From positions 47,798,000 to 47,844,744 of the forward strand of contig NC_068999.1 of assembly GCF_001194135.2 (NCBI RefSeq): a stretch of DNA of 46,745 bases, written 5' to 3'. A program made the translations under genes and the position numbers. Position 1 is the stretch's first letter; each line of letters opens with the position of its first letter. The notes beneath the pieces are model-generated. The model was not told where the DNA came from. It ran no database searches and worked only from the letters and a program-made list of their open reading frames with translations. Source of the stretch: Octopus bimaculoides (lineage: Eukaryota). Of this stretch, positions 1-31,771 are shown piece after piece.

Positions 1-816
1 ATTTACGTGCCATATGCTTCCGGGTTGATTGTGTTTGGTGTTAATATATTTGTCGTCTGATTCCAATCAAAAAGTTAATTATAATTTAATTATAATCATT
101 TCTACTTCCAAGTCTGAGCAATACAAACATTCTGCATCTACACAATGCCGTTCATAATATGCCATATAGAAACTTGTAAATAAATAAGTTTGTTAATGCT
201 TTAGAAATATTTTTCTCTGTGTGTGTGTGTGTGTGTGTGTGTGTTTGTCTATGCGTGTGCGTGTGTGTAAATGTACATGTGTGTATATATATATATATAT
301 ATACATATATATATTTGTTTATTTATATACATACACACTCATCTATCTATATTACTATCTATCTATCACTTTACATCCTGACTTTTCTGTGATACACGAT
401 CCCTATTGATCCTTTTTGTTTCTTTTACGATCCCTTTTGATCGAAAATCTACTCCCCCTTTTTTCCCCTTCCTTCTCCTCCCGAAGGAGAAAAGCTCTAC
501 TTTGTAACCTGTCCCCTCTGTGTTCAACCCTGTGTGGCTAATAAAGAAACATATCTATCTATCTATCTATCTATCTAGCTAGCTAATCGCGACATTGTGG
601 TTTCGATTCCTAGACCGGGTGGTGCATTATGTTCTTGAGCAAAACATCTCACGTTGCTCTGTAATCACTTCGACACCCGACATGTGGCACACAGTGCACC
701 TATTCGGCCAACGGCGGCGGCACATACACTTGATCACTATAAACAAATCATTTGTGCAGATCGTCCGGCAAAAGCTGAAGGTTCACACGTTGTCCTCGAC
801 GGGTGAGTTCATCATA

Positions 817-1027
817 CAGGGCGGCCCAAAAGTAGGTTTACAGTTATCACATAGGCACTTTAAATTTCTTTTAAAACATTTTATTACATTTAAATTTCTA
901 TCTTACAATTAACTAAATTAGCATAGAATAATGGTTTCATATTTTTTAATAATTAAGATCTAAACTGTTAATATATGAAAGCGAAAGAGATAGTTGAGTA
1001 TTGTAAACCTACTTTTGGGCCACCCTA
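817..1027. mobile_element. Tc1/mariner-type MITE
   Basis: Inverted termini CAGGGCGGCCCAAAAGTAGGTTTACA (817) and TGTAAACCTACTTTTGGGCCACCCT (to ~1026), with TA on the left flank. The right half recurs inverted at 23506-23606, next to a transposase fragment. Confidence 0.8.
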
Positions 1028-1220
1028 TGTATATGTTCATTTAACGACTTATAATAAAAAATAATTGTGAATTTTCCGAAAGTCCTCTCCACCCACAATG
1101 GTCGTCAGCGCAATTCTTTTTTCATATTCGTTTTCTACATACTTCTTAACACCCAGCGGACTGGTATACTATTTTTTTTGTTCACGGGGGAAGATCTTTG
1201 TATTGACCAATAATTTACAT

Positions 1221-1450
1221 TGTCCGGAAAGTTCGTGCCGATTTTTAAAGGAAAAAAACAAAAAGGGGTCAATAAATACTTGCCATTACATTTCTAATCA
1301 ACCAAATATGAACCATTTTGTTGCACAATGTGTCTCCATCTTTCCTTTAACTTGAAAATACCCTCTTCCCAGAATTGAGGTGGTTTCATGGCAAATAAGT
1401 CGAAAGGTAAGCTACTATAAATCGGCACGAACTTTCCGGACAACCCAATA
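1221..1450 (-). mobile_element. Internally deleted mariner element
   Basis: Perfect 24-bp inverted repeat TGTCCGGAAAGTTCGTGCCGATTT (1221-1244 / 1419-1442). It encloses FDLFAMKPPQFWEEGIFKLKERWRHIVQQNGSYLVD*, a typical mariner transposase C-terminus. Confidence 0.85.
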
Positions 1451-1589
1451 CTATACAATTTACATAATATTTTTTGTAGAGTACATACATATCGTACCTT
1501 TAGTGACTTCGAAGTCACTATCACCACTCGTCTTGTAAAAGTATATGTATGTATGTATGTATGTACGTACGTATGCATGTTTTTCTTCT

Positions 1590-2025
1590 TCTCTTGTTAA
1601 TTTAGAGTAAATTTTGGCAAGGCTTTGAATCTTGCAGATTTTTGTAATCCCAGATATCGAGATTATTTGTAGAATTTGAGATAAGTATTTGTCTCCTCTT
1701 CCCAAGAACCCAAGTTCAGCCATACTTTACTCCAGATGGGTTGGTATGCACCCTGTTATTCCAATAATAATGGGTATGAAGCTGAAAGTGTATCTTGGGG
1801 ACAGGATTTGCAAACTTCTCATCAAGAGTCCATAAATGACCTCTCCCACTTGTACTTTTCTAACCACATTGGCCTCAAGCGGGCAGATGTTTCCCACAAC
1901 AGAACAAAGCTTTTCCTTGTGATCATGTATGTATACCGGGTTTAACTGTGTTGAACTTTGTGTATAGGAACTGGCAGATAACCTGTCATCATTGTGAAAT
2001 TCTGGATTAGGTTTCCTAACAATTC
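1590..2025 (-). mobile_element. Degenerate R4/Dong-like (RLE clade) non-LTR retrotransposon C-terminus
   Basis: ORFs 1727-2062 and 1460-1723 are the same frame separated by one TAA: KEKLCSVV..CP..N...K....YG.L.R.LQIL.P.Y.F.FIPIIIG..G.IP..L...LGF......LQ..S..G..KICK, resembling the restriction-like endonuclease region. The catalytic PD motif is not recognisable. Confidence 0.6.
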
Positions 2026-2611
2026 CTGGAAAAATTATATTTCTGTAAATGTTTAGTTTCATCAGAATTATAGCAGATACCTTGATAGGTGTTGATGTAT
2101 ATATGTATGTAACAAAAGGTGGCGCTGGACGAGCTTTCGGAAAATTTTTATCGGATTACTAGGTTTTCGATGACGGATATTCCGAATATGCTAAAAATCA
2201 ANNNNNNNNNNTATATATATATATGTACACACACACAACAGACGAGGTATCAATAAATAATGGACACTGCATATTTTTCGCTATTGTAGTAAACTTGACT
2301 TGTAACTGTTTCCAGTAACAGCTGAAAGTCAAATTTACTACAATAAAGAAAATTATGTAATAGCCATTATTTACACCTTGTCTTGTATATCACCAGTATA
2401 ACCTTAAAGACCTGTATAACTGGTGCACAAGCGTGGATTTACAACATAGAGTGGTAATGAACGAGAGAACCTCGAACGCTGCCGCCAGAATACGCGGTGT
2501 TCTTAACTTAATCTTTAAAATATTGTTAGCCTGGTGTACTAACACAGAGGTTATAAAGTATTTTGCTTGGGCTGATAATCCCTCACTAATAACTATGTGC
2601 ACACACAGACA

Positions 2612-2654
<43 letters not shown>

Positions 2655-2767
2655 CTAATAAGTTCATTCAGACAAAACTTTAAGTGCAATGATTCTTATA
2701 GCTCAAAACAGCATTAAGCCAATAAAGTGGATTACGCAATTTCTGTTCCCTAATCATTCCATTAATT

Positions 2768-3404
2768 NNNNNNNNNNNNNNNNNNNNNNNNNNNNNNNNN
2801 NNNNNNNNNNNNNNNNNNNNNNNNNNNNNNNNNNNNNNNNNNNNNNNNNNNNNNNNNNNNNNNNNNNNNNNNNNNNNNNNNNNNNNNNNNNNNNNNNNNN
2901 NNNNNNNNNNNNNNNNNNNNNNNNNNNNNNNNNNNNNNNNNNNNNNNNNNNNNNNNNNNNNNNNNNNNNNNNNNNNNNNNNNNNNNNNNNNNNNNNNNNN
3001 NNNNNNNNNNNNNNNNNNNNNNNNNNNNNNNNNNNNNNNNNNNNNNNNNNNNNNNNNNNNNNNNNNNNNNNNNNNNNNNNNNNNNNNNNNNNNNNNNNNN
3101 NNNNNNNNNNNNNNNNNNNNNNNNNNNNNNNNNNNNNNNNNNNNNNNNNNNNNNNNNNNNNNNNNNNNNNNNNNNNNNNNNNNNNNNNNNNNNNNNNNNN
3201 NNNNNNNNNNNNNNNNNNNNNNNNNNNNNNNNNNNNNNNNNNNNNNNNNNNNNNNNNNNNNNNNNNNNNNNNNNNNNNNNNNNNNNNNNNNNNNNNNNNN
3301 NNNNNNNNNNNNNNNNNNNNNNNNNNNNNNNNNNNNNNNNNNNNNNNNNNNNNNNNNNNNNNNNNNNNNNNNNNNNNNNNNNNNNNNNNNNNNNNNNNNN
3401 NNNN
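2768..3404. other. Assembly gap (others at 4430-4871, 15324-15903, 17301-17417, 23845-24755, 29738-29921; short gaps at 2201-2211 and 8194-8203)
   Basis: Runs of N, several flanked by microsatellites. Confidence 0.98.
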
Positions 3405-4010
3405 ATATATATATATTTGTGTGTGTCTGGAGTTGAAAGGGAGTTAGGAGGTAATACATATCAAAAATTATGGTTGAAAATGTTATAAAGCTGGTAGAAA
3501 GGCACAGAAGCATATTTTAGAGAATGTTTAATAGTCTTGTTCCAGTGAGTGATTTAAAATATGACCGGTTTCGGTTATCAAATATTAGAGAGAATTTTTT
3601 AGGAAGTCAAAGAGACAAAAAAAAATGGCGGTGGGGTTCAACAGTTTGTAGCCATGTTTAATGCACTTCAGCGTCACTCCTTAAATATGTTGTGTCTACG
3701 AAGGTTTGTGGTGAGGTTCAGGAATTCTATTGAAAAGAAGTCTTTTGAATTGAATTGGTGGTTTCTATTCATGGTATGAGCAGCTGTGTGTCTATGTGTT
3801 TTGGAATATATTGTCAAAATCTTCCTTCTTTTTTTTTTACCTTTTTTTTTCTATTGAGAGAATATGGACAGCAGTTAAGGATGGTCGTTCAAAGAATTTA
3901 CAAGAAAATATTTTTCATTTGATTTTATTTATTTATTTTTTGTTTGCGTGGGTGTCAATATATGTGTGTTATTTTTGTTCTTTGGAAATATGTTTTGTAT
4001 ATTATGGTGG

Positions 4011-4057
<47 letters not shown>

Positions 4058-4229
4058 CTCAGACAGACACACACACATGACGACGATGGTGTTGGTGTGA
4101 AGTTCATTGAATAAAAGAGGAGAGGAAGCGCGCGCGCACACACACACACACACATACACACACACACACTCGCACACACGCTCGCACAGGTACAGGCAGA
4201 CACGTTGTATGCGTGGATGAGACACATAT

Positions 4230-4420
4230 GTACAGGCGTGGCTGTGTGTGGTAAGATGCTTACTTCCAAACCACGTGGTTCCGGGTTCAGTCCCACTGCG
4301 TGGCATAACCTAGTGAGTAGATTTGGTAGAAGGAAACTGAAAGAAGCACGCCATACATATATGTGTATATACATACATACATACATACATATGTGTGTGT
4401 GTGTTGACTCTTTTGTCTAA
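4230..4420 (+). mobile_element. tRNA-derived SINE family B copy
   Basis: Head GGCGTGGCTGTGTGGTAAGA..GGGTTCAGTCCCACTGCG with A/B-box-like motifs, body ..GATTTGGTAGA.GGAAACTGAAAGAAGC, running into microsatellite. About 10 further copies in the window (e.g. 17715-17885, 25500-25810, 28215-28540, 30392-30660, 33660-34035, 41730-42110, 42670-42970, 44270-44430; approximate). Confidence 0.8.
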
Positions 4421-5399
4421 TATATATATNNNNNNNNNNNNNNNNNNNNNNNNNNNNNNNNNNNNNNNNNNNNNNNNNNNNNNNNNNNNNNNNNNNNNNN
4501 NNNNNNNNNNNNNNNNNNNNNNNNNNNNNNNNNNNNNNNNNNNNNNNNNNNNNNNNNNNNNNNNNNNNNNNNNNNNNNNNNNNNNNNNNNNNNNNNNNNN
4601 NNNNNNNNNNNNNNNNNNNNNNNNNNNNNNNNNNNNNNNNNNNNNNNNNNNNNNNNNNNNNNNNNNNNNNNNNNNNNNNNNNNNNNNNNNNNNNNNNNNN
4701 NNNNNNNNNNNNNNNNNNNNNNNNNNNNNNNNNNNNNNNNNNNNNNNNNNNNNNNNNNNNNNNNNNNNNNNNNNNNNNNNNNNNNNNNNNNNNNNNNNNN
4801 NNNNNNNNNNNNNNNNNNNNNNNNNNNNNNNNNNNNNNNNNNNNNNNNNNNNNNNNNNNNNNNNNNNNNNNATTCCAGAACTCATCCATGAAAATCCAGT
4901 CACATATAGAAAAAAATTAATAAGTAAATACACTAAAAAGAACTATAATAAAATACAATATTTGACTGTGGCCATGCTGGAGCACTGCCTTCAGTCGGAG
5001 AAATCGACCCCAGGACTTATTCTTTGTAAGCCTAGTGCTTATTCTATCGGTTCTCTTTTGCTGAACCGGTAAGACACGGGGACATAAACCCACCAACATC
5101 GGCTATCAAGCGATAGACACACAAACATATATATACATAAGATAAATTAAATATAGAGATATTCTAATGACAGTCCAATAATTTATTTATATTACAACAT
5201 TACATTAAATACTATGAATATAATATTATATAAATAATACAAAAATCGTATAAAAGGCCAACAAATTGTTTCGACTTATATATATTATTTCTGATATATA
5301 TAAACGCATTTCCATTATATATAAATCACTTTGAAGGATTTCTTTTCCTCAGTTTGTTACGATATATATCATTAGTATATATATGTATATATATATATA

Positions 5400-5760
5400 T
5401 AATAAAAAACAAAGAAAAAGACAACAGGAAAAAAAAGCAACAACGCGAGGACGTGGTACGTTGCAAAGTGTTAATAAGAGAAGAAAAGACAGGGTGTTTT
5501 ACGTTTCAAGCAAAGGCTCTTCTTCAGAAACAGGGAATAAGAAAGTCCAAGTCAAAAAGAAGACGGCGGAAAAAAATCGTTCAATGCTCCAAATGAGGAG
5601 TAGATAGACAACCGACAACTGATGAAGGGCCGTTATTTGTGTTACTTGTCCTGTTTTCCATTTGTTTCTCTCGTTGTTTGCGTATTGAACCCATTTGTTC
5701 TTGTATTTCATGTTGTTTACTGTTTATTCGCCGGTTTATACCAGTGTTCAGTGCTAACTA
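5400..5760. mobile_element. Possible Penelope-like element terminal fragment
   Basis: Motifs ACGTTTCAAGC..CTCTTCTTCAGAAA and CTGATGAAGG resemble PLE terminal repeats. No coding homology recognised. Confidence 0.3.
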
Positions 5761-7004
5761 ACTACTTTAGTTTTGCATTGGTGTATATTGGTATTTAAAA
5801 TATTCATGAATGTGTGTATGTATATGTATAGAGGCATGTATGAGCACATAAACTACACTCTTCCAATTTAAGTGCGCATAGGTATGTATGTTTGTATCCA
5901 TGAATATACATGTGTGTGTGTGAATGCACTTCTGTATACGTGTATGCACATATGTATGTAATTATGCATCAGGCCATGTCGTCTTCTCGCCTAAGTCAAC
6001 ACCATCCTTATTGGCAATCTTTCCCCACCAATACCACTCTCTTGGTCTGACCATCACAACCTCTCCCGCATAAATATGACAATCTCCCATACACAAACAC
6101 CATCCCCTCCTCTGATCATCACCACTGCATCGACATCATCCCCATCGTCTGATATCTCTCCTACACCAACAGAGTCCGCTCCATCTGACCAGGTCTCCCA
6201 TACCAACACCATCTGCTTCCCATATACTAACACTCTTCCCTTCACCTGTCCATCTTCCCACGCCAACACCCCTCTCTTCCATGGACCATTTCTCCCACAC
6301 CAACACCATCCCCTTCATTTGACCATCTCCTCCATACCAACACCATCTTCATCGACTGACCATGCATCTCACACTAACAACATAATCTTCCTGCAATCAT
6401 TTTGATATAACAAACTGGTTTGCTATTTCATCGACAAATCTTGTACTTAAGAATGATAATCTTCACTTGACAGAACACGACGCACGTTTTAATTGCTCCA
6501 ACATTTTGTATAAATTATTTAAAGAAATTGCCAGTCCGAATGAAAATTATATTTTTAATGAATAAGGCTCTTTTGTCTGAAGTAGCAAAGAAAAAAAACG
6601 ATATATAAAAATGAGAATCATACAAACGTAACAGTTTAACTGGAATTTATACCTTGTGGTAATACAACTAGATTAGAAACCATTTAGCGGTGTTTGACTT
6701 GATTTTTCTTATTGTTTCTGGACGGGCAACATTTAGCGAAAGTAATTATTTCCCTCGCCTCTGCCATTGAAAGGCATTCAACACGGAATTGTGATATCAG
6801 TCGCTCTGAATTAACCAATCTTAAATAATTGTGGCAGACGTATGAGCAAAACTGAGTTAAGCAATGATCTTTCTTAATTTTGGCAAGATGGTTCAAATCT
6901 GTTTTCACTATTTCATTATCACGACGGAAAGATATTCATTATACTTAAAATTTTGTGTTAAGCAACCTGTTTTAGTGATAAATTCTTATAATATAGACGT
7001 CAGT

Positions 7005-7200
7005 GAGGCAGCAAGCTGGCTGAATCGTAAGCACATCTGGCGAAATGCTCAGCGGCATTTCGTCCTGTTTTGAGTTCAAATCCCACCGTGGTCGACTTTA
7101 CATTTCGTCTCTTTCGTGGTCGGTGTAATCAACTTACCTCTACGCCCGAAATTGTTGGCCTTGTACCAAAATTTGAAATCAATCTACATAAAGTTAGGGA
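7005..7200 (+). mobile_element. tRNA-derived SINE family A copy
   Basis: Matches the recurring consensus GAGCTGGCAGAATCGTTAGC..GAGTTCAAATTCCGCC..GTCGACTTTGCCTTTCATCCTTTCGGGGTCGATAAA. About 15 copies in the window (e.g. 11122-11300 +, 11590-11800 -, 12190-12405 -, 15940-16110 +, 19680-19866 -, 32570-32960 -, 34510-34720 -, 34850-35070 -, 39775-40070 +, 40710-40900 +; approximate). Confidence 0.75.
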
Positions 7201-7503
7201 CAAATAGAAAATTTAATTAATAATTTCGAAACATTAAATTTATGCCAGTGACAAAAAGGAAAAAAACGTATTTAATACGTTAACGCTTTAGTATCAAAGA
7301 CACTTTTGAAGAGAATTTGAAACAAAAAGGCAGAGTATTGAATGGAAGACTAAAATGGGTTCAGAAATGAAAGTTAAAAAATCGCCAACAGTTTTGAGTT
7401 TGACTCCTCGTTTATAGCGCAAGTTGCATCAAGTGTTTTACTGTACGTACACTACACCCTCTGAAATCATCATCATCATCATCACCGCCATCACCACGAC
7501 TAC

Positions 7504-7535
<32 letters not shown>

Positions 7536-8965
7536 CTTAACGTCCGCCTTCTATGCTGGCATGGGTGGGACGGTTTGGTAGAAGCCTGCACCAGACTTCT
7601 GTGACTGTTTTGGCAGGATTTTTACAGCTGGATGCCCTTCCTAACACCAACCACTCAGTGGAGTGGACTTAGTACTTTTTACAGCTGGGTGCCCTTCACT
7701 TTACAGTGTGGACTGGGTGCTTTTAAGTGGCACCTGCACTGACAGGGTCACCAAGTACTTGCAAGACAAAAAAAATCTCTTTTGAGAAGGGTGGGGACAT
7801 TGGAGAAGGTGATCTTGTGTCAGATGATGAAAGGTTATAGTGAGGCAGAGAGACAGAAACAGAGGAGGTACAAGGTTACTCGGCGAGAGAGAGAGAGGGA
7901 GGTGGGGAGAGATCAGGAATGAAGAGAGTAACAGGTGCAGTGCCGCAAAGGAAATACATGATTACCAAACCTGAGGGAAGTGCAGGAGGAGGGAGTGGGA
8001 GACAGCAGGATAGAGATGGTGGCAAAGTGCCGGGCATACTCAAAAGGGACGGGGATCAGAATATAAATGGGATGGTGAGTAAAGGAAGAGAGAGATATAG
8101 ATGGTGTACCCTTGGGGTTCGAACGTCGTAATATAAATGGCAGGTTATTGCGAGGAAGCGTGATTAGAGAGTGTAGACGGGGTGGGGCGAAAGNNNNNNN
8201 NNNAACAGGATTGGGAAGTGAGAGGTAGGCATAGTGTATGAAGGAGGAAATGTGAGGAAAAGAAGAGATGTAGATTAGTTTGTTGGGGTAGGGTGTGTGA
8301 AAAGTTTTCTTGATACGCGTGGGTGGACCACACAAGTCGGACTAGCGGATATCAATGATTCAGTGAGACAGGGCCAAGAGAGGATTGGGGAGTAAGTAGG
8401 AGATAAGCATAATGCATAAAGTGGAAATGCGAATAAGAGAAGAGATGTAGTTTCATTTGTTGTGGTAGTGTGTGTGTGAGAAGTTTTCTTGTTTGAGTTT
8501 CGCTGACGTGGGCGGGTCTTGTCAAGAAACTCATATTGCCAGACATCTCGGTCCATTGTCATTTCCTCTGCGAGGCCCAACATCATGAGATCGGTCCTTA
8601 CCAACTTCATCCACGTTTTCCTGGGTTTCCCTCTTCTGTGGGTACCATCCACTTTCAGTGATCGGCACTTCTTTATGCAGCTGTCCTCATTCATACGTAC
8701 CACATGTCCAAACCAACATAGTCTTCTCTCTTGCATGCTACATTTGATTCCTCTTATGCCCAACTTTTCTCTCAATACATTTGCACTTTGTCGTACATGC
8801 GCACTGATGTTGTACATCCAACGAAGTATACTAACTTCATTTCTCTCCAGTCTACGCATGTCTTCTGCATTCAGAGTCCATGTCTCACTACCATGGAGCA
8901 TAACCGCTCGCACACAAGCATCATACAGTCTACCTTTCACTCTGAGAGCGAGAGAGAAAGTCCAT
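7536..8965 (-). mobile_element. 5'-truncated RTE-clade LINE (ORF2 C-terminus, 3' UTR, (GAT)n tail)
   Basis: ORF 8275-8940: KGRLYDACVRAVMLHGSETW..RLCWFGHVVRM..RRGKPRKTW..DRDVW, the post-RT C-terminus typical of RTE. The 3' end ..CCATGCCAGCATAGAAGGCGGACGTTAAG is followed by (GAT)n at ~7505-7535. Related 3' fragments at ~23080-23470 and ~30640-31490. Confidence 0.9.
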
Positions 8966-9754
8966 TTGCTGTCATAAAAATCAGATTTTATGTTTCATTA
9001 TATTCTCTCATACACTGGGTATCCCATCCTTAATACGGTTACATTAGACGCATGCCAATTTTTCGCTTAATTTACGAATAAAAAAAAAAGTGCGTTAATT
9101 ACCGGCTTAAAGCAAAGAATGCGAAATCTTTGTTAACTGGTAAGGGTGATAACTAGAGACTTGTTTCGATCTATTAGACATCATCAGAGCTATGTTGTCT
9201 GATCAAACATTATTTCTTGATTATCTCCCTTTTATAAGTGTCGCTAATAATTACTACCAGGTATCAGTTTTCTTTCCATAACCAAGAAAGAAAATTAAAT
9301 AAAGATTTTTTTTTTTGCGTAAGCTCTTCAGTACCTGTTTCCTCTTTTAGTTCACTTTATTATTTATTGTACATTATTTATATTTATTATATATATTATT
9401 GCCTTACGACAATCAAATCGATTTTTAAAAATCTGTTTCATTCTCCTTAAAAAAATGTTTGTACATAAATAATTTGAAGTTTCATCAGATCTTCGGCTCA
9501 GCATAGAAATAATGAATCTTTTGAAACTGTGTTAGTTTTTCCTGTTTATTAAAATGAAATTATTTACAAGTTATTTCATATGAAACCTTGTGTGATAGTC
9601 TGTGTATAGTTTCATATGAATTTCTAAACGATGTTTTCTTCATAAATGTTTACTGTCAATTTTCTCTTCACTTATAAAATTCCATTCAATAATTTTCGCG
9701 GCGACCATGAAAAATTTAATCTTATATATTTTTATATATTTCTCTTTGTTTCAG

Positions 9755-10111
9755 AAAGCCGAAATATTACTACTTCTCTTTACATTTCCATACCTGTCGT
9801 CTCCTGCCTACATGAACTTCAAAGAAAACGCAGATTGTTCCATTGCGTGCGGTAATTTTTCCCTCTCCTGCTTCAAGCAATGTTTTACACATCTGAAGCA
9901 CAGCTTCGACCATTGTATCAAATACTGCAAATATTACATGAAGCAATGCGATTTCTTCTGCTTTTGTATAGATTGTAAAGGCAGCTTGCGGCCACCAAAT
10001 CCTAGACGATTCGTTTATACAAAACTAACTAAATCAAGACTAACTAAATCTCGAAAACCTTCAGAGGAAATATCTAATCTTTCTAAACCTAAAGGAAAGT
10101 CCTTGGAATAA
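9755..10111 (+). CDS. Probable terminal exon of a secreted cysteine-rich peptide precursor (family not recognised)
   Basis: Strong acceptor TTTCTCTTTGTTTCAG ending at 9754. 118 open codons: hydrophobic KAEILLLLFTFPYLSSPA, then 10 Cys arranged CX3C-X6-CX3C-X10-CX3C-X6-CX3C-X-C-X2-C, a dibasic RR and a basic tail. AATAAA at 10441. Confidence 0.55.
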   Translation, partial: KAEILLLLFTFPYLSSPAYMNFKENADCSIACGNFSLSCFKQCFTHLKHSFDHCIKYCKYYMKQCDFFCFCIDCKGSLRPPNPRRFVYTKLTKSRLTKSRKPSEEISNLSKPKGKSLE

Positions 10112-13044
10112 ATTTTGTTCATGAAATATGACTTTGTTCCGCATTTTCTGATGACAATGACTTTGTTCCGCATTTTCTGAATAACGATTTAGCATTAAAA
10201 TAGCGGAAATTTGGTAATAAGTGTATAGATATTGTGTGCGTTTATGTATAAGTATGTAAACACATATGCTCATATACATACGCATGAATATTTATGGATG
10301 CATGAATCTGTTTTATGGATGCGCTGGTATAATTCTTTTTTTTTTGTTTGTTTTGGTATAAAAGTTATAATCTATTTCGCAAATACATTATTTGCAAACA
10401 TTACAGAAATGATTTACATCGTGTCAAGAGTCGAAGAGAAAATAAATGATTTCTTTATAAATGTTTTCTGAGTTCCAGAAATGTTGTAACCAAAAATGAT
10501 ATTAAAGTTTATTTCGTTATTTGAATCTAGTTGAAAAAAAAAAGATGTCCGTAAATTTGGATGTAGTTGGCACCGTGTTGCTTGTTTTACATATTTTTTT
10601 TTTTACCGGTGTTTGTAATTTGATGCATGTCCACCAAAAATAGTTTCCTGTTAAGAACCAGAATGGAATTGTCTTTTCATTTATTAATATTCCATCTTCC
10701 CACTGATCGTAAAATACGTATATAAATTACAGAGAATTAGATTTTCAAACTGGCATTCAACAGTACTATGACTCTGAGACGTGCAATTGTCTTCAATACC
10801 TGTACACAAACTATTACTCTATAACAAATGCTACTGGCTACCTTTACTCCCCACCTCCAATGTTTTTTCTTTTTTAATTGTAAGTTCTGTTTGCGTCATA
10901 CGCCCTATTCTTTCATTCTGAATGTAACTTAGCAGAATTTAGACGATTAGATTAAATAATTTGTAATTTAAAGCTTCTTTCTTCTGTGTCCAATTCTCTC
11001 GAAGACATAACAGTATACAAGTAAAATATTAGATTCTACACAGGAATCGAACCGCTTTCCAGCAAACATTAGTCTTGCGCTTTGTGAAGACGTATATGAT
11101 CTTTCATTCCCAGTATTGTAGTAAGGCGGCGAGCTGGCAGAATCGGTACCGCGTCGGCCATTTATGCTTAGCGGCGTTTCTTCCGCCTTTACGTTCTGAT
11201 TTCAAATGTCGCTGAAGTCAACTTTGTCCTTCATCCTTTCGCGATCGATAAAATACGGGCCAGTTGGGCTCCTTCCCACAAAATTTCAGGTTTTGTGCTT
11301 ATAATCGAAAGAATTATAACAGATTTAATAGACTTGAGTTTCACAATATATAAAAAAAAGCTAAGCTGAAAGGGAAAATGTCCCAGGTTTTTTTCTTTGA
11401 TAAAATGAAATGTCACATTGTAAAGTTTGCAGCGAAGGAACAATTGACCAATTTTTTGGCAAGCACTTGGTACTCCCGGTGTAGGTGGGGAGTGCTTTTT
11501 TTTTCTTGTCACTGATAAATCGCTAACAGTGGACAACTTGATCAAATGCTGAATCTATTCACTTTCTTCATTAGTCATTCTTTCTAATTTTGTCACAAGG
11601 CCAGCAATTTTGAGAGGACGGGGCCAGTCGATTACATCGACCCCAGTACTTGATTGGTACTTATTTTATTGACCCCGAAGGGATGAAAGGCAAAACTAAC
11701 CTTACTGAGATTTGAACTCAGAACATAAAAAGCCGGAAGAAATGCAGCCAAGCATTTTGTCCGACGCGCTAACCGTTCCTCCAGCTCGTCGCCTTTCTCC
11801 CCAGTTATTGGAAAGAAATCATTACCACAGTAAACAATAGTGGATTAATGACTGTATTGACGAAAATAGATTCTTTGTAAATGTAGCAGAAAATTTATGG
11901 TAAAGAACTCAACTGGATTCCACGTTACGGATTTCGGGCCAAGTGTTGGCAAGTGGTCAGTGGTTTTTAATAATGTTGGAATCTGAATAAAAACTAAAAT
12001 GTTAATTTGACGTTTTAGAAGTTGAATCGCAGAGAAAGATGTTCACTCTAAAACTGTGGGAGATACGGGTGGATTGAGACCAGTCAAAGCTTTTGAAAAA
12101 ATCTATCATAACGACAGTTACTATCCATTTACCAAATGCTTCGGTCCCTGTTTCGAGTATTAGGTTCTGGATTGTATGTTACTTATTGGTTTCAAATTTT
12201 GGCACAAGGCTAGCAATTACGAGGGAGATGGGGTCGAGTTGATTTCATCGACCCCAGTGCCCAGCTGGTACTCAATATATTGACGCCAAAAGGATGAAAG
12301 GCAAAACTCGACTTCAGCGGAATTTGAACTCAGAACGTAAGAGAAGATGAAATGCCGCTAAGCATTTCGCCCAGCGTACTAACGGTCCTGCCAGCTCGCT
12401 GCCTTGTTGTAAGTAAATAATTACAATTATTAATTATTAATACTTTGAATAATGTATCCATATTTTATCATCACCATTAGAACTATAGTGGTAGTCTCAT
12501 AGTGACTGGCTAATCTTATTGTTGCACCACATTGTTCCATCCAGGAAAGAAATAGTCCATTTTGTAGAATTGGAATTGTTCTGTAAATTTATATCTCAAC
12601 TAAGTACTCAATACCTCTTCATGAATGTACACTAAACATATTTGTTATTCTTGGTCCATCTTAGCCATTGTCTTAGATTTGTGAGAATATTATTTCTGTA
12701 TTAACGCTCAGTTCAGTAATAAGAGATTTTCTGCTTAGTTTGAACGGTATATTCATCAATAATAACTCTCTTATATATAATACATTCAACCATAAGGTTT
12801 GACTTTTCTGGAATATATTCAATAAAAAGTAGGCCATATACAAACATCAAAATCTTAACTGTTCTTTGTAAAAGAACGAATAAAGATCTTAAAGACATTC
12901 CATTAGTACCTGGTTCGATTCTTCTCTGGAGACTCCATCAGTATACACATTATTGCCTGTAAAACATAATGAACAATCGCTTCTTCGAGAGAAGTTAGAT
13001 GTTTTTGTGTTATAACTGTTAGGAATTTGGCGCATTTGAGTTTT

Positions 13045-13970
13045 TCACACGAAAAACACTTTGTTAGCGGCTGACAAATATTCAGATGAATTTCGTTTCA
13101 TAGATGTCTGGGGTGAACATTCTAGTCTCGGTTTTAAGCTCATTATAAGGGGATTTCCGTCATGATCTGATGTGCACCATTTATGAACAGACATTGGTTT
13201 ACAGACATTTGGAAAATGTGGCATCAGAATACCAATATCAGATATCTGAAATTCAAGTTCAACGAAATATAATGGTTCGGGAATAATATGTGGAGGCAGT
13301 TGTTTGAGAACAAACTGTATGTCATAGTGTACTTGGTTGTCCACTGTAAACATACAGAAGTCATCTTGTTCGTATTCAGGAGCTGAATTCATAAGAACTT
13401 TGTAAAAGTTCACCATCGCAAGCCAATTGTCGTAGCTGACAAATAACATAAATCGCAAATGCTCTTTTCCATAATGTACACGACGAATTCCCCAGAGAGG
13501 ATAACCTTTTGAAGTACCATAGAATTCCTGCATATTATCGGAACAAAATTCTATTGCTTTTCTTTTGTCTATTCGTGATTGATGATAAAATTTCCACGGT
13601 TTCTGTTGAAAATAAAACTGAGCTTCCAAAAATCTTTGCTGAGTAAGCAATCCGTCCTCGAGTAAAAAAATCAAAATAGAAAAACTAGGCACAAAAACAT
13701 GGCGGAGACAATCTTGCTTTTTCAGTGAATTATTCTCGGAACAACGAGGACTTCTATTTTCTGATATTTTTATAATATGTAGATCAGAATCAAGAAGATT
13801 TATTAGCGGCCGATACAGTGTATTAAGCATATTGATTTGGCTGCTGTCGGCGAATATTTTAACTTCAAAAGGTAGAAATGATTCATAAATTTCGGTAGTG
13901 ATTATACTCGCGACTTCGGAACTGGAATCTGAACGACTCGAGCTTTCCTTCGAAGAATTCGAGCTAGCAC
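13045..13970 (-). CDS. FAM124: FAM124-family protein, main coding exon
   Basis: PLWGIRRVHYGKEHLRF, DDFCMF, DIQFVLKQLP, EFQISDIGILMPHFPNVCKPMS..W.TSDHDGN match the FAM124A/B core (LWAIRPVHYGKEIVRF; EFRVRDIGELVPLLPNPCSPISEGRWQTEDHDGN) as recalled. Acceptor TTTTCTTTCCGTTTTTAG ends at 13971, so the exon starts in phase 1. Confidence 0.9.
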
Positions 13971-14403
13971 CTAAAAACGGAAAGAAAAAAAAATTGTGTA
14001 ACTGTTGGCCATAAACCCAAAGTAAATAAAAACAAAATAAATGCAATTTAAATGTACACAACTATGAATAAAAATACAAAATACTTTTACATAAGAATCT
14101 GAGCGATTTATATAATTGTGTGCCTAAAACTAATTTCAAATATTTGTTGTGCCATTCCATAGATATAAATTCGCAAGCATAATGTGTTTGCGCACGCGCG
14201 CGTTTTGTATATTAATACCCGACACCTCCTCTACATCTTACCATTACATCTTGACAAAAATACGCACGTTATACATCACACGACAGCGTTATCACACCTC
14301 ATCCTCCCTACTCATGAATGAAACAGTCTAAAGTTATCAAGCACTATAGAAATTCTAAGCCTGCTAAGCATTCTGCTAATATTATTTACATCTGCAGTGA
14401 CGT

Positions 14404-15287: not shown

Positions 15288-17417
15288 ACACTCTATCACT
15301 ACTTTCGGAGAAAATACAGCTCCNNNNNNNNNNNNNNNNNNNNNNNNNNNNNNNNNNNNNNNNNNNNNNNNNNNNNNNNNNNNNNNNNNNNNNNNNNNNN
15401 NNNNNNNNNNNNNNNNNNNNNNNNNNNNNNNNNNNNNNNNNNNNNNNNNNNNNNNNNNNNNNNNNNNNNNNNNNNNNNNNNNNNNNNNNNNNNNNNNNNN
15501 NNNNNNNNNNNNNNNNNNNNNNNNNNNNNNNNNNNNNNNNNNNNNNNNNNNNNNNNNNNNNNNNNNNNNNNNNNNNNNNNNNNNNNNNNNNNNNNNNNNN
15601 NNNNNNNNNNNNNNNNNNNNNNNNNNNNNNNNNNNNNNNNNNNNNNNNNNNNNNNNNNNNNNNNNNNNNNNNNNNNNNNNNNNNNNNNNNNNNNNNNNNN
15701 NNNNNNNNNNNNNNNNNNNNNNNNNNNNNNNNNNNNNNNNNNNNNNNNNNNNNNNNNNNNNNNNNNNNNNNNNNNNNNNNNNNNNNNNNNNNNNNNNNNN
15801 NNNNNNNNNNNNNNNNNNNNNNNNNNNNNNNNNNNNNNNNNNNNNNNNNNNNNNNNNNNNNNNNNNNNNNNNNNNNNNNNNNNNNNNNNNNNNNNNNNNN
15901 NNNAAAATTGAAAAGAATAAAATAATGTAAATAAATAAAATTTGTTCGTCTTTACGTTCTGAGTTCAATTTCCACCGAGGTCGACTTTGCCTTTCATCCT
16001 TTCGGGGTTGGTAAACTAAGTACCAGTTGAATACTGGGGGTCGATGTCATCGACTATCCCCTCCCCCAAATTATTACAGGCCCTGTGCCTATAGTAGAAA
16101 GGATTATGAGGAATTGTATAAAAATATTGTTTAAAATATTTTGTGTATTGTAGAAGTGCAACCAGTTTATTGGACATAAACTTAAAAACAAAATCTAACG
16201 TGACCCCCCCCCCCAAGGGTCATATGGACCCCGGTTCAGAACCACCGATACCCAGTAAAAGACTCGTTCTTGCTGAGTTTCATACACAATCCCATTTCAA
16301 TCACAACTTATATACATTCTATTTATTTTACGTCGCAATTAAAATCGCGAAAATGTTCTCCTAATCATTCCACGCGGTTGTGTCGTCTTTTTGCCTCTGG
16401 CATTTATCTGTTCCACTCAATTTCTCTTTGTTGTAAGAGCTATGTGATGTGGTAGAAAAGAACCATTCTCGTCACCTCATATCACAGTCCTTACAACCTC
16501 GTACAATAATTTCATTCCGACTATTTCTAGTCACGAATAACACATTTCTTTACACGGAATCACTATAAAAACACTCACCATCACTGCTCGAACCAACTGA
16601 ACTGTATCTTTGTGATCTGAAAATATAAACAACATTTTTTTCTTTTTTTTTTTCACATAAGCAACAAATTCAGAATATAAACACCAAAGTTTATATAAAT
16701 TATATAAAACAAATCTCTGATGCATCCTTCTTTGAACACCAATTTATGTAACATCTTAATCTTTAATCTTTTATTTGTTTCAGTTAGTGAACTGCGGTCA
16801 TACTGGGGCACTGTCTTAAAGAGTTTCAATCAAACAGATCGCCCCCGGTACATATTTTCAACCCCATGACAATGGTTTTTTTGTCAAGCAACTGTGTTGC
16901 ATTGACGGTAATCATCTCGGCTGAGATCAGCAATTAGCGCACGACAATGGTTCGGCGTTTATTTACATCAACCGCTTTAACCAGTTTACGGCAGTGGTTT
17001 ATTCGGTTGCTTGCGCGCGTCGGTTGAGGTTAGCACTCAGTGCGATATTCACGTTCGGCGTATATTTACGTCAACCGCTTTAATGCAAGTACCTTTTCAT
17101 TTACCTACACTATATCCCTGCGCAGGACACTCATGCGGTATCATTCCTGAATAAGATCACTTGACAGCACAAGAAGTCAGATCAACTTTATATATTTACA
17201 ATCACGTGAATTCGAAAATTGACTTTAGTGTGGTAGAGTTCTGTTATAAACCCAAACTCGAATATCAAAGTTAAAAAGGTTTTAATCTACGTCCAATGCC
17301 NNNNNNNNNNNNNNNNNNNNNNNNNNNNNNNNNNNNNNNNNNNNNNNNNNNNNNNNNNNNNNNNNNNNNNNNNNNNNNNNNNNNNNNNNNNNNNNNNNNN
17401 NNNNNNNNNNNNNNNNN

Positions 17418-18974: not shown

Positions 18975-20163
18975 TTCTAAAGTTATTTATTTGAAAGCGT
19001 TGGATGCGAGATTGTGGATTGAGATGATGTGAAAACATCCCATTATTCTCTTAAATAACCAGAAGTAGTTTATTGAAAATGGCAGTAGTATTTTTGTTAC
19101 TGCCACTTGCGCTATTTTCGAAAGGCATTGCTTCCTTCAACATTCTAAATATGAGATATCTGCCTCCTGATATTCCGTGATTCACAATTCGAGCAACGTT
19201 TAAAAAATACCTCTGTTAATCCTTCAGGCACATCAGTAATCTTATAGTTAAAGAGGCCGATGGTGACATTTTCTTTCAGCTTTGCACCACATCCCGTCGT
19301 CTATGAACGCTTAACTAGTATCGTTGGACAACAGCCAACAGATGTATTCGAGGAGTGGAAGGTAAAGAATGCAAAGAATCAAAAACAAAGAATAAATGGG
19401 AAGGTCAGAATGGCTTTTGAATGAAAAGCTGTTCTAAAGGTTCTGGAGTTCTTTGGTGGTTACTCATGCGCATCATTCGTGGCAACGTGGGTACACACAC
19501 ACACGTATATACGTTTATATACATTAACACACATACACAAATGCATATATATATATACATATAAATATAGATATATATAGACACACGTATATGTGTATAT
19601 ACATGTATGTATGTATGTATACATACATACATACATATATATATATATATTGAGGGATCACTGTATATAATAAATCTTTTCTACGCTAGGCACAAGGCAG
19701 TCGATTAGATCGACCTCAGTACGCAACTGGTACTTAATTTATCGACCCCGAAAGGATGAAAGGAAAAGTCGACCTCGGCGGGATTTGAACTCAGAACATA
19801 ACGGCAGACGAAATACCGCTAAGCATTTCGCCCGGCGTGCGAACGTTTCTGCCAGCTCGCTGCCTTAATGTATATAACAAATAATCTAAAAATGAAATTA
19901 AAAACAATCTCAAAAAAATCTTTTCTTAGTTTAATCGAATTAAATCCTTAAGGCACCGCTCCTGATAGTTTACTTGAATCTATTCCATGGAATTTCTATT
20001 TGTGTGTCAACATCCTACCACCGCTTTCCTCGGAACATACTGTAGTTTCCCGCTCAAGTTCACCACTAAAGCTATATTGATTGGCACCATGCCAAGCCGA
20101 TTATTGGGCCAAACCCGTAACGAAAGATCTGGGACCGTACCCTTTAATTCCTTTCACACTTAC

Positions 20164-25134: not shown

Positions 25135-26146
25135 GATTAAATCACTTATAACTATTAATTCTATATCAACAACTGAAACTATTTACTGTCAACGATTTAA
25201 ACTATTCAGAAATTCAAGTAACCTTTCAATAATTCTATTACATTAGGGAATGTTATTTTGTATAGGCCGAAAACGGGTGGTGTGCGTATCCTTTACCTTC
25301 GCCTCAACCCTAACCGCCGAAAACGGGTGGCGTGTTGTATTCTTTAACTTCGCCAAATCACTTTTATAAATGTAACATCTATTTCGTTGTTTTTGTTTCC
25401 GTGCCGGTTTTTGCCGGGGAATCTCAACATCCGGTTGAATCGCACGTTAAAATCGATTTATCAACCGTTTTACAGCAACGTTTTTTTTTTTGTTATTTAC
25501 TTGTTTTCAGTAATTGGAGTGCGGTCATACTGGGGCACCGCCTTGAAGGGTTTAGTCGAACAAATCTACCCCAGTACTTATTTTTTTAAAGGCTGGTATT
25601 TATTCTACCGATATCTATTGCTGAAAAGCTAAGTTACGGGAACACATATATGACGAGCTTCTTTCAGTTTCAGTCTATCAAATCCATTCACAAGGCTTTG
25701 ATCGGCCCGGGGCTGTAGTAGAAGACACTAGTCCAATGTGCCACGCAGTGGGACTGAACCCGCAATTACGTGGTTGGAGAGCAAACTTCTTACTACATAG
25801 CCATGCCTACGTCTATAATATGTACATTAGAAAGATAAGAATAAAGCATTTAACACAAAGAAGGCTTGCCTACAATTTTAACAAAAGAACCAAAACACGT
25901 TTAAGAATAATATCGACCTACCTCTTGAAAATTATTTTAAAATAAAATACAGCAAAAACAGGAGGGAAAGAAATGATGTTTTCAATGACAACTTGGTATT
26001 TATTGATCGGAATGCAGGCGAATAAGCAGTAGAAAAAAACATTACTGAAACTACTTTTCGCCTTCAGTTCTATAATGATGTGAAATCGAAACACATTCAG
26101 TCATTCTTAGTTTAAAAAATACAAAAATAAGAGTCAACAGTTCTAT

Positions 26147-26905
26147 TCACTCTTCTCCGTCGTCGTCTGCAACCCTGAGGAAGTTCTTGGCAGCGGTTTC
26201 AGCTTCTTCTAAAATATGTGTTGGTACAAGTTCATGTTTTCCACCAGTGTGTTCTCCAACCCAACTTAATTCCAATTCAAAAGCTTTGTCTTTGATTTCG
26301 TCGTGGACAACATGAATGATTTTAGCTACTTCTTTCACTACTTCAGTAATAGGCATATCCTTGGTCTTCAGCTTTTCGATTTCGGTTTTGGCTGTCTGGC
26401 GAGCTTTACCGATGGCGCAGCCGTAATATCCCCAAGATACACCGGAGGGATCGATCATGTAAAGTTGAGGATTACCTTGTTCATACGAGCCCATAATCAT
26501 ACTGACACCGAACGGACGCATGGAGCTGTATAGAGTGTAAGCATGGACGTACATGGAAACTCTGTTGGTAAGATACTTCAGTGGAATCGACTCTCCGTAG
26601 TTGTAACGATAATTAGCAGCTTCTTCACGAGATGTCTTAATTACATGACGAGCATCAGCTAACAGACCAGCAACTGCAGCACCAATGTGTGTATCAATGT
26701 TGAATATTCTCTTATTTGCTCCCACTTCGTACAATTTGGACCGCACAAGTTTCTCAACGCCGAACACAACACCGTCTTTGCCGCGAATGCCGATGGCCGT
26801 GCCGCTGTTCTCTACCGCTTTTTGGGCATATTCCACTTGGAATACACGCCCATCGGGTGAGAACTGCGATGCAGATAAGTCATAACCAGTACCGATGGAA
26901 CTCAT
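26147..26905 (-). CDS. PSMA3: Proteasome subunit alpha type-3 (alpha7), intronless, 252 aa
   Basis: [27 protein letters not shown] start, [49 protein letters not shown] and an acidic tail. True start is Met14 of the ORF track entry. AATAAA on the minus strand at 26004-25999. Confidence 0.97.
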
Positions 26906-26978
26906 TAGAAAGTAAATATGTACAAACCCAAGAAACAGCTTCACTGACGAACGTTAACAAAACTGCTTTATCACTTTG

Positions 26979-28034: not shown

Positions 28035-28888
28035 AAATAACTAACCTAATTAACTAATAATAAAGAAGTGAAATGAAACCAGTGCGTGTGTTTATTATTG
28101 GCATAATGACCGGTGGTCTGTCCAACCGTCATCAGCAGTGGGAGTTGTTCTGGTAACGAGGATATCTATTTTGTCTCATTAATCCTACCTCTTTCCCTTT
28201 CCAAAAGATAGTACCAACAGGACCTGTCTCTTGGGCAAGTGTCTTCTACTTTAGCCTCGACCGACCAAAGCCCCGTGAGTGGATTTGGTAGACGGATACT
28301 AAGAGAAGCCCGCCGTGTGTGTAAATATATATATATATATATGTGTGTGTATGTATATACGTGTGTGTGTGTGATCGCGCTTGACAACCGGTTTTGGTTT
28401 CTTTGTTTCCTCGTAACTTAGCAGCTCGCCGAAGGGACCGATAGAATAAGTACCAGGCTTAAAAATAAGTCCTAGAGTTGATTCATGCGACTAAAATTCT
28501 TCAAGGCCTCATCATGATCGTAGTCAAATGATTGAAACAAATAAAGATACTTTTATTGATGGCTTTCCTGCTTCGGGATTCAATGTTCCGAAAGCAAAAA
28601 AGCAAAAAGAATCATTGCTTGTCTTTTATTTCGTAATTGACTTAACTACAAACACTTTTAACACAAAAAAGCAACATATCAGGTGTTACAGGAACCAATA
28701 TGAGACAGAAAAGAGAATTGGTATATGTTAGTTCTTTTATTTTTTTTCATGCATTTGTAAATTCAATATGGCTGCTGTTGAGATATATTCCCATGTTATC
28801 TGTGTGTATATGTATATCTATGTAGTGTTATAATAAACTACTGACTCTTCCTGGCACAGGTTTTAGCTTCACGTCCAACACGCTGCAA

Positions 28889-29737: not shown

Positions 29738-31771
29738 NNNNNNNNNNNNNNNNNNNNNNNNNNNNNNNNNNNNNNNNNNNNNNNNNNNNNNNNNNNNNNN
29801 NNNNNNNNNNNNNNNNNNNNNNNNNNNNNNNNNNNNNNNNNNNNNNNNNNNNNNNNNNNNNNNNNNNNNNNNNNNNNNNNNNNNNNNNNNNNNNNNNNNN
29901 NNNNNNNNNNNNNNNNNNNNNTTTTTATTTATATCCCTTCGCATTAATATTGCTTTGTGTTGGATTTTGTTTTTATAAAATTCTGTTCATTGATTTACTA
30001 TAATAATTGTACACACATTTTGACAATATTCGAATATAAACAATATTCCAAATATGGAATCGTTGAGTGCTACGTTATTCGTGTTGTTACGGTTTCGTTG
30101 TAAGCTGCATTGCTTTCACATAATTTGTTGGTAAACGAAAAAAATGTTTAGGAAAAGACTCAATTTTGGGCAGGAAACAAAACTCACGGAAAAAAAAAAA
30201 AAATTCTTTCACGGTCCCAAAATCAGGGGCTGGAAGTTAGAGATAATGAAAACAATCGATAGATTTAAAAATGGAGAAAATAAATAATTTGATAACATCA
30301 GCTACGAAAGATTAACAACATTAACGAAAAAAATAACAACTATTTATTTATTTAGAATATATAGATACTAATTGGATATAATTTAAAATAGAAGGCGTGG
30401 TTGTGTGGTAAGAAGCTTGCTTCTCAACCGCATGGTCTCGGATTCAGTCTCACTGCGTGACACCTTGGGTAAGTGCCTTCTACTATAGCCTCGGTCCAAC
30501 CAAAGCCTTGTGAGTGGATTTGGTAGACGGAAATTGAAAGAAGCCCATCGTATATATGTATATGTATATATTTGTGTGAGTATGTCTTTGTCTGTGTTTG
30601 TCCCCCCCCCCCCCAAGCTTGATAACCGGTGTTGGTGTGTTTATGTCTCCGTAACTTAACAGCTGCATAAAGAAGTACAATTGCTTAAAGTGGATAGAAC
30701 TTGCAGGAGAGGGAGACTCAGGAATATATGGAATGCAGTGAATGCTGATTGCAAAATGCTGACCCTTATGGAGGAGATGACAAAGGACTGAGATGATTTA
30801 TAACTTGCTGTACTCAAAAAGGCTGTCCATCATAGCAGAAATGATATTCTAAAACCACTTTGGTTATGTTTGCATGTGTGGGGGCCTTGTCCCTGCTTTT
30901 ACACTCTCCCTGCTCTGCCAATCACAACCTTTTCTGCCTTCATCTATTGCTCTCTTCTGCTATACTTCATTCTTAACTGCTCTCGTACCTGTTATCACTT
31001 ACCATAACCTCCATGAGCTACTCCTATATCTCTTACCATCACTCATTACACGTACCTCAACCCCCATCTTTCCTTTCTATCCCACCCCTAAACAATCTAC
31101 TGTATCTTGAAATCTTCCAGCATTCCACCACCAATTCCATCTTCTTTCAAACTTTCCCACTACTCAGCCTAGTATCTCTATTACAAGCCACCTGGGCTTG
31201 TTTTTCTGTCACATTCTAGTCTCTCAATGCCTAGCATAGAACCATTGCCCCTCCTCCATATAATCCTCCTCCCCTTTTATTCCTTCTTCTTCCTTGCTTT
31301 GCAAGTTATTTGGCAACCTCACTAATGCTGGTGGCATGAAAAAGCAACTAGTACACTCTTTAAAGTTAGCATTAGGAAGAGTATCCAGCCATAGAAACCA
31401 TATCTAAGCTGACATTAGATCTTTGCAGGATCTTGTCAAACCAGCCAGCCCATGCCAGCATAGAAAACGGACATTAAATGATGATGGATGATAAGTGCAT
31501 GTTGAATACGAAAAATACTTTGTAAAATTTAGTTTTCTTAGCTGTTGGGGAAGTGGTTTGAACTGACCTTTTAGGATCTTTTTGTAAATTTACACAAAAT
31601 GATGTGAACTGTGTTGGTCTTAAGAAATTAATCTTAATACAGATAGATTTTTAAAATGTTTAATATAAATCAAGTTTGTGGAAATTTTCAATGGATTTTA
31701 AGATTTTATTTTATTGATAAAAGTTTCTCCTGAGAATTTAATGATGTATATATATCTTCATATGATTTCAG

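Follow-up and report, generated by a model that had tools for sequence, protein, structure and literature searches.

A probable octopod-only two-exon gene for a secreted ten-cysteine protein in Octopus bimaculoides

Exon and gene structure

The window, that is, the whole stretch of 46,745 nucleotides (46.7 kb) of Octopus bimaculoides DNA that was analyzed, is gapped eukaryotic genomic DNA of about 35% GC. It contains eight runs of N (10 to 911 bases, at 2202-29921). Four of these lie inside the intron of the gene described here, and the length and content of this intron in the window species are therefore uncertain. The gene enters the window with its intron and contributes one coding exon, the open frame of which starts at 9755 and ends at a TAA at 10109-10111. 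The acceptor junction at 9754/9755 reads ctctttgtttcag followed by AAAGCC. The features of the gene that fall in the window are as follows:

1-9754 (+): 3' part of the single intron, with four assembly gaps and repeat- or transposon-derived sequence
9735-9754 (+): splice acceptor, a pyrimidine tract tatatttctctttgttt plus cag, 82% pyrimidine
9755-10111 (+): coding part of exon 2, the final coding exon; 118 codons plus TAA, phase 0
10112-10199 (+): start of the 3'UTR, with the first polyA-like signal, ATTAAA, at 10194 (candidate)

Translation of the frame gives KAEILLLLFTFPYLSSPAYMNFKENADCSIACGNFSLSCFKQCFTHLKHSFDHCIKYCKYYMKQCDFFCFCIDCKGSLRPPNPRRFVYTKLTKSRLTKSRKPSEEISNLSKPKGKSLE, which runs from a hydrophobic start (KAEILLLLFTFPYLSSPA) through ten cysteines and LRPPNPRR to a Lys/Arg/Ser-rich tail, where a 15-nt direct repeat at 10025 and 10040 encodes LTKSR twice in tandem (10025-10054). 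The cysteine spacing is C-x3-C-x6-C-x3-C-x10-C-x3-C-x6-C-x3-C-x-C-x2-C. The original prediction for this exon had given the peptide, the cysteine spacing, the PRR, the duplicated LTKSR, the ATG at 9192, and the CAG/GT at 9260/9261 exactly. It had also held the spacing to be unlikely by chance, which is not so for the motif alone: a regular-expression scan of the six-frame translations of the window returned 12 C-x3-C...C-x3-C strings, mostly from TG/CA microsatellites, and the motif alone therefore proves little. It is the conservation of the cysteine pattern between species, described later, that raises it above chance. A transposon match, which the original prediction had flagged for checking, was not obtained: the window protein matches no Pfam family, transposon families included, and an Rfam search gave no match. 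The locus has no second copy in the window or in the stretches of the orthologous loci that were compared (40 kb and 20 kb), and a search for paralogues in the 46.7-kb window and in the two orthologous loci L001 (O. vulgaris) and L002 (a more distant species) found none.

In all four species compared, a pyrimidine tract plus (C/A)AG stands at the identical codon boundary, as expected from the original description of a spliced exon behind a strong acceptor. Translation upstream of this point gives unrelated F/L/S-rich text that is unconserved across species, and, judged from these comparisons, the sequence upstream of the 9755 acceptor is intron. The O. vulgaris gene occupies 20,150 bp for a 119-aa product and has two exons. 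Its first coding exon reads CAACAAAAATG followed by GTAAGT, contributes only the ATG (annotated ATG/GTAAGT at L001:10001-10003), and lies 19.8 kb upstream of the second. This ATG is the first downstream of a CCAAT (L001:9817) and a TATAAA (L001:9852), both of which are consensus matches only and lie 184 and 149 nt, respectively, upstream of the lone ATG/GTAAGT exon. A SINE copy is found just upstream of the two elements (L001:9539-9696). The O. vulgaris annotation pipeline combined Iso-Seq/RNA-seq PASA-TransDecoder models with protein alignments and ab initio predictions (PMC10700109). Transcript support would be the simplest explanation for an initial coding exon of just 3 nt, and the gene model may be partly ab initio.

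O. vulgaris L001:10189-10536 aligns collinearly to window positions 1-352. Base 1 of the window thus corresponds to L001:10189, which places exon 1, predicted to hold the 5'UTR and the ATG only, outside the window, about 186 bp 5' of base 1. Splicing of the exon-1 ATG to the acceptor at 9754/9755 would give a 119-aa pre-protein. The original prediction had offered two start options, and its second one, an ATG-terminal exon further upstream, agrees with the O. vulgaris gene model. The first one, ATG 9192 with the donor at 9260, was rejected, as in O. vulgaris this ATG is followed by TAG and a 2-bp indel is present. Also rejected was a single-exon ORF from the in-frame ATG at 9707: this ATG is TTG in O. 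vulgaris, and what is translated upstream of the acceptor is, in all species, an unconserved pyrimidine tract. The only other start-donor site of this kind in the window, ATG/GTGAGT at 8072, sits inside a repeat-derived block; the O. vulgaris model does not use it, its conservation is uninformative at 90% background identity, and as a start it is improbable. A search of the 10 kb 5' of the L002 exon yielded no homologue of exon 1.

The repeat-derived block covers 7508-8974 of the intron and carries a 221-aa ORF (8275-8940, minus strand) without a Pfam match, which we take to resemble the C-terminal part of a LINE reverse transcriptase. Its occurrence at the corresponding position in O. vulgaris (81% identity) marks the block as an old insertion. 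On the 3' side of the gene, the 300 nt after the stop codon share 93% identity with O. vulgaris. Just 3' of the stop, a 22-nt exact direct repeat (GACTTTGTTCCGCATTTTCTGA) occurs at 10130-10151 and 10159-10180; O. vulgaris has it too, and it could be either an element of the 3'UTR or the product of a simple duplication. Further downstream, a large exon of a FAM124-domain gene occupies 13045-14061 on the minus strand (E 3e-58, 90.5% identity to the O. vulgaris neighbor). FAM124 on the minus strand is the downstream neighbor in both the window species and O. vulgaris and serves as a synteny anchor; within 10 kb in L002, no FAM124 synteny was seen.

Predicted protein and its orthologues

The predicted protein consists of a signal peptide, a 66-aa core with ten cysteines, a proline-rich hinge, and a basic tail, the last three of which make up a predicted mature protein of about 100 aa, 11.7 kDa, and pI about 9.3. 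Its parts map to the exon as follows:

9755-9808 (+): predicted signal peptide, the exon-1 M plus KAEILLLLFTFPYLSSPA; predicted cleavage between SPA and Y
9836-9976 (+): ten-cysteine core; 10/10 Cys invariant in four species
9854-9862 (+): invariant N-x-S sequon in the first x6 loop; NFS here, NYS in the other clade
9986-10009 (+): conserved LRPPNPR(R/K) hinge with a dibasic pair at its end
10010-10108 (+): basic tail at the C-terminus; 33 aa with a net charge of +6
10076-10084 (+): second invariant sequon, NLS, in the tail

The N-terminus, MKAEILLLLFTFPYLSSPA followed by Y, begins with a charged n-region, continues with some 12 hydrophobic residues, and has small side chains at -3 and -1; the other clade has SYA followed by Y at the predicted cleavage site. 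The maximum 9-residue hydropathy is 2.56 (at ILLLLFTFP, a short h-region), and the 19-residue value is 1.3-1.7, which leaves some room for a membrane anchor. The hydropathy maximum and the small -3/-1 residues bear out, at the level of sequence heuristics, the signal-like start seen originally, and we infer that MKAEILLLLFTFPYLSSPA is a cleaved signal peptide. The same heuristics give the protein the features of the generic class of secreted cysteine-rich proteins: a signal peptide, an even number of conserved cysteines, and no other membrane segment. The even number, ten, is consistent with five disulfides. The tail has a pI of 10.45 when R85 is included (34 aa), and across species the part from R/K85 onward measures 31-34 aa with a net charge of +7 to +9. 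The dibasic pair is RR in the window clade and RK in the other clade. Cleavage by a convertase is thus possible at this site but unsupported.

Three relatives were found in 5.8 billion proteins searched. The closest is O. vulgaris CAI9737000.1 (UniProt A0AA36FFX1; chromosome OX597832.1; 119 aa), a "Hypothetical predicted protein" with 96% identity and five amino-acid differences from the window protein. The other two, P0002 (with a variant, P0005; five sequencing runs) and P0003, have 61-66% identity to the window protein and were called as read-through ORFs on contigs from the genomes of more distant octopod-like species. An HMMER family-profile search of 1.84 billion representative proteins returned nothing beyond octopod sequences and one artifact, P0004, a bacterial exact-repeat protein without cysteines that was rejected as a summed-repeat score. 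The restriction to one lineage, part of the original prediction, thus holds in both searches, and the gene qualifies, by sequence, as an orphan (taxonomically restricted) gene that is octopod-only among these 5.8e9 and 1.84e9 proteins, searches to which unannotated cephalopod exons are invisible. The description of the peptide as unrecognized stands in part: the window species' own protein has no entry in the 5.8-billion-protein collection, and an ORF of the spliced transcript was sought there without success, but the O. vulgaris orthologue had already been deposited, uncharacterized. Neither the sequence nor the accessions are mentioned in any paper in the literature searched.

Like the window gene, that of CAI9737000.1 has the implied two-exon layout, the downstream FAM124 neighbor, and the identical cysteine framework, and the window exon belongs to the orthologue of CAI9737000.1/A0AA36FFX1. 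The two differ in intron length (19.8 kb in O. vulgaris versus about 9.9 kb, gaps included, in the window species), and the O. vulgaris protein is without functional annotation.

A four-way alignment of the window protein, the O. vulgaris protein, P0002, and P0003 showed that all ten cysteines, the block CIKYCKYYMKQCD, two histidines (H46/H49), two N-x-S sequons, and the hinge L78-R84 (LRPPNPR) are invariant, with R or K at position 85. The conservation of the cysteine pattern in related species, on which the original prediction depended, was therefore confirmed in four species. Nei-Gojobori dN/dS was 0.108 for window versus O. vulgaris and 0.061 for L002 versus L003 (the two distant species), these being the two unsaturated pairs. 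Core dN was 0.006-0.019 versus a dS of 0.24-0.61, and dN/dS in the tail (about 0.2-0.5) was higher than in the core. Between the clades, synonymous sites are saturated, whereas core dN is only about 0.16. Each pairwise comparison shows stronger conservation in the exon than in the 300 nt that flank it on the left and on the right. These substitution patterns indicate that 9755-10111 is a genuine protein-coding exon under strong purifying selection.

Likeness to known families

The alpha-hairpinin motif, C-x3-C-x(4-20)-C-x3-C, is widespread inside other families and is non-diagnostic (PMC11591084), and the alpha-hairpinin family itself is a plant family defined by its fold, a helix-loop-helix with C1-C4/C2-C3 pairing (PMC7191063). 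The octopod core fits the cysteine motif formally in three overlapping registers (x6, x10, x6). Alpha-hairpinin precursors and the octopod protein also share a signal peptide, tandem cysteine modules, and a C-terminal extension (PMC7191063, PMC11591084). However, alpha-hairpinin modules are separated by linkers and released by processing, whereas the octopod units are contiguous and have no inter-module cleavage sites; unlike those linkers, the 10-residue stretch between the two octopod units itself completes a third motif. The octopod protein further differs in its two extra cysteines (CxCxxC) and its animal origin; alpha-hairpinins carry at most two cysteines beyond the core motif. Motif and fold define the alpha-hairpinin family, not homology. 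AlphaFold2, run on the four-sequence alignment, gave low-confidence models (pLDDT 42 for the full length and 46 for the core), both with a strand-helix-helix-strand order and helices over CX3C units 2 and 3, and Foldseek against the PDB gave nothing better than E 2.8. The alpha-hairpin idea of the original prediction thus rests on a motif that is non-diagnostic (PMC11591084) and on a fold that structure prediction at pLDDT 42-46 left unconfirmed. Sepia egg-case proteins (SepECPs), with about 50 cysteines and different motifs, are unrelated.

The top PDB sequence match in phmmer and profile searches was CRD2 of TACI (TNFRSF13B; 1XUT), with E values of 0.044 (profile), 0.2 (window core), and 0.0095 (distant-clade core); the reversed window core, used as a control, reached E 0.16 against unrelated proteins. 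TACI CRD2 (A1-D2 modules, PDB 1XUT/1XU1) contains C-x3-C-x6-C-x3-C (C-ASI-C-GQHPKQ-C-AYF-C) and shares SLSC...HL...KQC-YFC with the octopod core. TACI is a vertebrate receptor domain, and one of its cysteines is misaligned relative to the octopod core. The Pfam TACI/BCMA models match neither the window protein nor its orthologues. Membership of the TACI/BCMA (TNFR-type CRD) family was rejected, as human TACI matches at control level and the Pfam models are silent, and we regard the likeness as an analogy in spacing only. In the TACI/BCMA A1-D2 module the cysteines pair 1-3/2-4 and not in the manner of a hairpin, so that an alpha-hairpin would not be the only way to read the CX3C pairs.

Another lead came from Pfam CRAL_TRIO (PF00650), against which the two distant orthologues score between 22.4 and 25.2 bits (E 1.6e-5 to 1.2e-4): their cores reach 25.2 and 24.0 bits, and the full-length proteins 23.8 bits (P0002) and 22.4 bits (P0003). 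Relative to the gathering score of 22.6, three of the four scans lie above and full-length P0003 just below. The window and O. vulgaris proteins gave no PF00650 match. The match spans only profile positions 17-68 of 153, and the ORF ends about 30 residues later in the basic tail. Variant mapping showed that the match requires both halves of the core and is kept when Cys is changed to Val and lost when it is changed to Ser; the cysteines therefore occupy hydrophobic positions of the profile. When window residues 26-36 were placed in a distant core, the score dropped to 14.7 bits, and the window protein with residues 26-36 of the other clade scored 22.8 bits. Twenty control sequences (one reversed, the others Cys-fixed, full, and hydrophobic-pattern-preserving shuffles, with n = 10 for the last kind) gave no CRAL_TRIO match, and the match is therefore not a simple composition artifact. 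On the other hand, an HMM of 120 TTPA/RLBP1/Sec14 proteins scored the cores at -2.5 bits, and hhalign against CRAL-TRIO gave probabilities of 0.2% and 0.05%. PDB searches returned no Sec14-like chain, and no CRAL_TRIO gene was found in the window or the orthologous loci. A complete CRAL-TRIO domain (about 150 residues) was rejected, as a third of it is covered and a signal peptide and ten cysteines are present; Sec14-like proteins are cytosolic lipid carriers, unlike the octopod protein with these two features. No described family includes the octopod protein, and no fold or function has been described for it.

Proposed nature and surroundings of the gene

We consider it probable (about two chances in three) that the locus is an octopod-only two-exon gene for a secreted, disulfide-rich, probably N-glycosylated basic protein that acts on a conserved endogenous partner. 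The mature protein of about 100 aa would fold in the ER around five disulfides, probably become N-glycosylated, and then be secreted. The tail, which is basic and evolves faster, may undergo trimming at RR/RK or serve to bind polyanions. The protein may act on its partner as a signaling ligand or as a component of the matrix or of a secretion. An endogenous partner is proposed because the gene has a single copy locally (checked over the 46.7-kb window plus 20-40 kb around two orthologues) and because its core has hardly changed across lineages whose synonymous sites are saturated. Such a pattern is usual for proteins matched to a conserved endogenous partner and unusual for effectors in an arms race; evolutionary rate and copy number thus lead us to infer a partner of this kind and not a role as toxin or antimicrobial.

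The original prediction had named a lineage-specific toxin, antimicrobial, or signaling precursor as possibilities. On the toxin or antimicrobial reading, the exon would encode an antimicrobial precursor or a toxin of the venom, saliva, or skin, with active alpha-hairpinin-like hairpins freed at RR and a cationic tail adding membrane activity. The basic pI of the mature protein (about 9.3) and the two helices placed over CX3C units 2 and 3 by the low-confidence AlphaFold2 models would suit such a peptide. Toxins and antimicrobial peptides, however, are usually multi-copy and diversifying, and this gene is single-copy in the examined sequence and under strong purifying selection, with a dN/dS of 0.06-0.11 and a nearly invariant core, which makes the suggestion a poor fit. 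In addition, RR is RK in the other clade, and Foldseek did not confirm a fold. Each C-x3-C-x6-C-x3-C unit does fit the alpha-hairpinin motif formally (PMC11591084), and the alpha-hairpinin fold is a helix-loop-helix with C1-C4/C2-C3 pairing (PMC7191063), but the motif is widespread and non-diagnostic (PMC11591084), and alpha-hairpinins are plant peptides. We regard a toxin or antimicrobial as unlikely. Rather improbable, in our judgment, is descent of the core from a CRAL-TRIO/Sec14 beta-alpha-beta fragment (profile positions 17-68), with buried hydrophobic residues replaced by cysteines after a signal peptide was gained. The 22.4-25.2-bit matches of two distant orthologues, their survival of the Cys-to-Val change, their need for both core halves, the restoration of a match in the window protein by the 26-36 swap, and the silence of the 20 controls argue for such an ancestry, and the strand-helix-helix-strand order modeled by AlphaFold2 would fit it. 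The lack of a match in the window and O. vulgaris proteins, the results with the 120-protein HMM and hhalign, the PDB searches without a Sec14-like chain, and the absence of a nearby CRAL_TRIO gene speak against it; moreover, only one third of the domain is covered before the protein ends about 30 aa later, and the same residues weakly match the structurally incompatible TACI. Even more of a long shot is the combined proposal that the gene founds an undescribed octopod-specific family of ten-cysteine secreted proteins, for example hormone-, pheromone-, or matrix-type ligands, whose core was perhaps exapted from that fragment by remaking its hydrophobic core into cystines.

It is also conceivable that the protein is not secreted, with the hydrophobic segment being an anchor or unused and the ten cysteines and conserved histidines binding metal (Zn, Cu, Fe-S) in an intracellular or membrane-tethered protein. 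CX3C and CxCxxC motifs together with histidines are possible metal ligands; the invariant H46 and H49 could thus act alongside the cysteines, and the 19-residue hydropathy reaches 1.66 in one clade. We find this very improbable, given that the hydrophobic run spans only about 12 residues, with a cleavage motif of the classic small-x-small type after it, that the even cysteine number and the two invariant N-x-S sequons fit passage through the ER, and that metal-binding Pfam families gave no match. Finally, the AT-rich intronic surroundings and the transposon fragments directly upstream could hint at a chance ORF, a pseudo-exon, or transposon-derived sequence without a protein product. A dN/dS of about 0.1, cysteines that are invariant across saturated synonymous divergence, an exon that is more conserved than its flanks and unique in the window, the absence of a transposon domain match, and the annotated O. 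vulgaris orthologue leave this reading largely refuted and its likelihood close to nil.

Lineage-specific genes without a known role are numerous in cephalopod genomes, and orphan secreted cysteine-rich proteins are common. The proposed secreted protein is an unusually clean case, with two exons, a single copy in the examined sequence, and a constrained ten-cysteine core across deep octopod divergence, and it is a tractable candidate for a clade-specific secreted factor, possibly with a new disulfide-rich fold. Already known was the O. vulgaris orthologue as an uncharacterized prediction; new is a family within the familiar orphan secreted cysteine-rich class. The window species appears to have an annotation gap at this locus, probably because the start codon makes up an exon of its own far upstream, a layout that gene finders often overlook. 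The result is thus of use to cephalopod biology and as an annotation fix.

Elsewhere in the window, two families of dispersed repeats were observed. One is a SINE-like element of about 165 bp, of which the window and the O. vulgaris locus both contain numerous copies in either orientation.

11626-11797, 12237-12405, 15947-16107, 19699-19866, 34497-34689, 34844-35089, 40712-40895 (both strands): SINE-like copies of about 165 bp
4960-5114, 25642-25819, 28230-28545, 30393-30671, 33648-34028, 37665-37877, 42821-42970, 44257-44430: second repeat family, 150-380 bp

Two further long ORFs lie on the minus strand. The one at 26147-26944 is an uninterrupted 265-aa frame for a complete proteasome alpha subunit (Pfam Proteasome and Proteasome_A_N, E 4e-52), presumably similar to PSMA3; lacking introns in an intron-rich genome, it could be a retrogene or a genuine single-exon gene. 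The other, at 35386-36930, encodes a 514-aa leucine-rich-repeat protein in a single ORF (LRR_8 x7, E 1e-53), with a hydrophobic N-terminal start and a membrane-like C-terminal segment, and its product is probably an LRR transmembrane protein.
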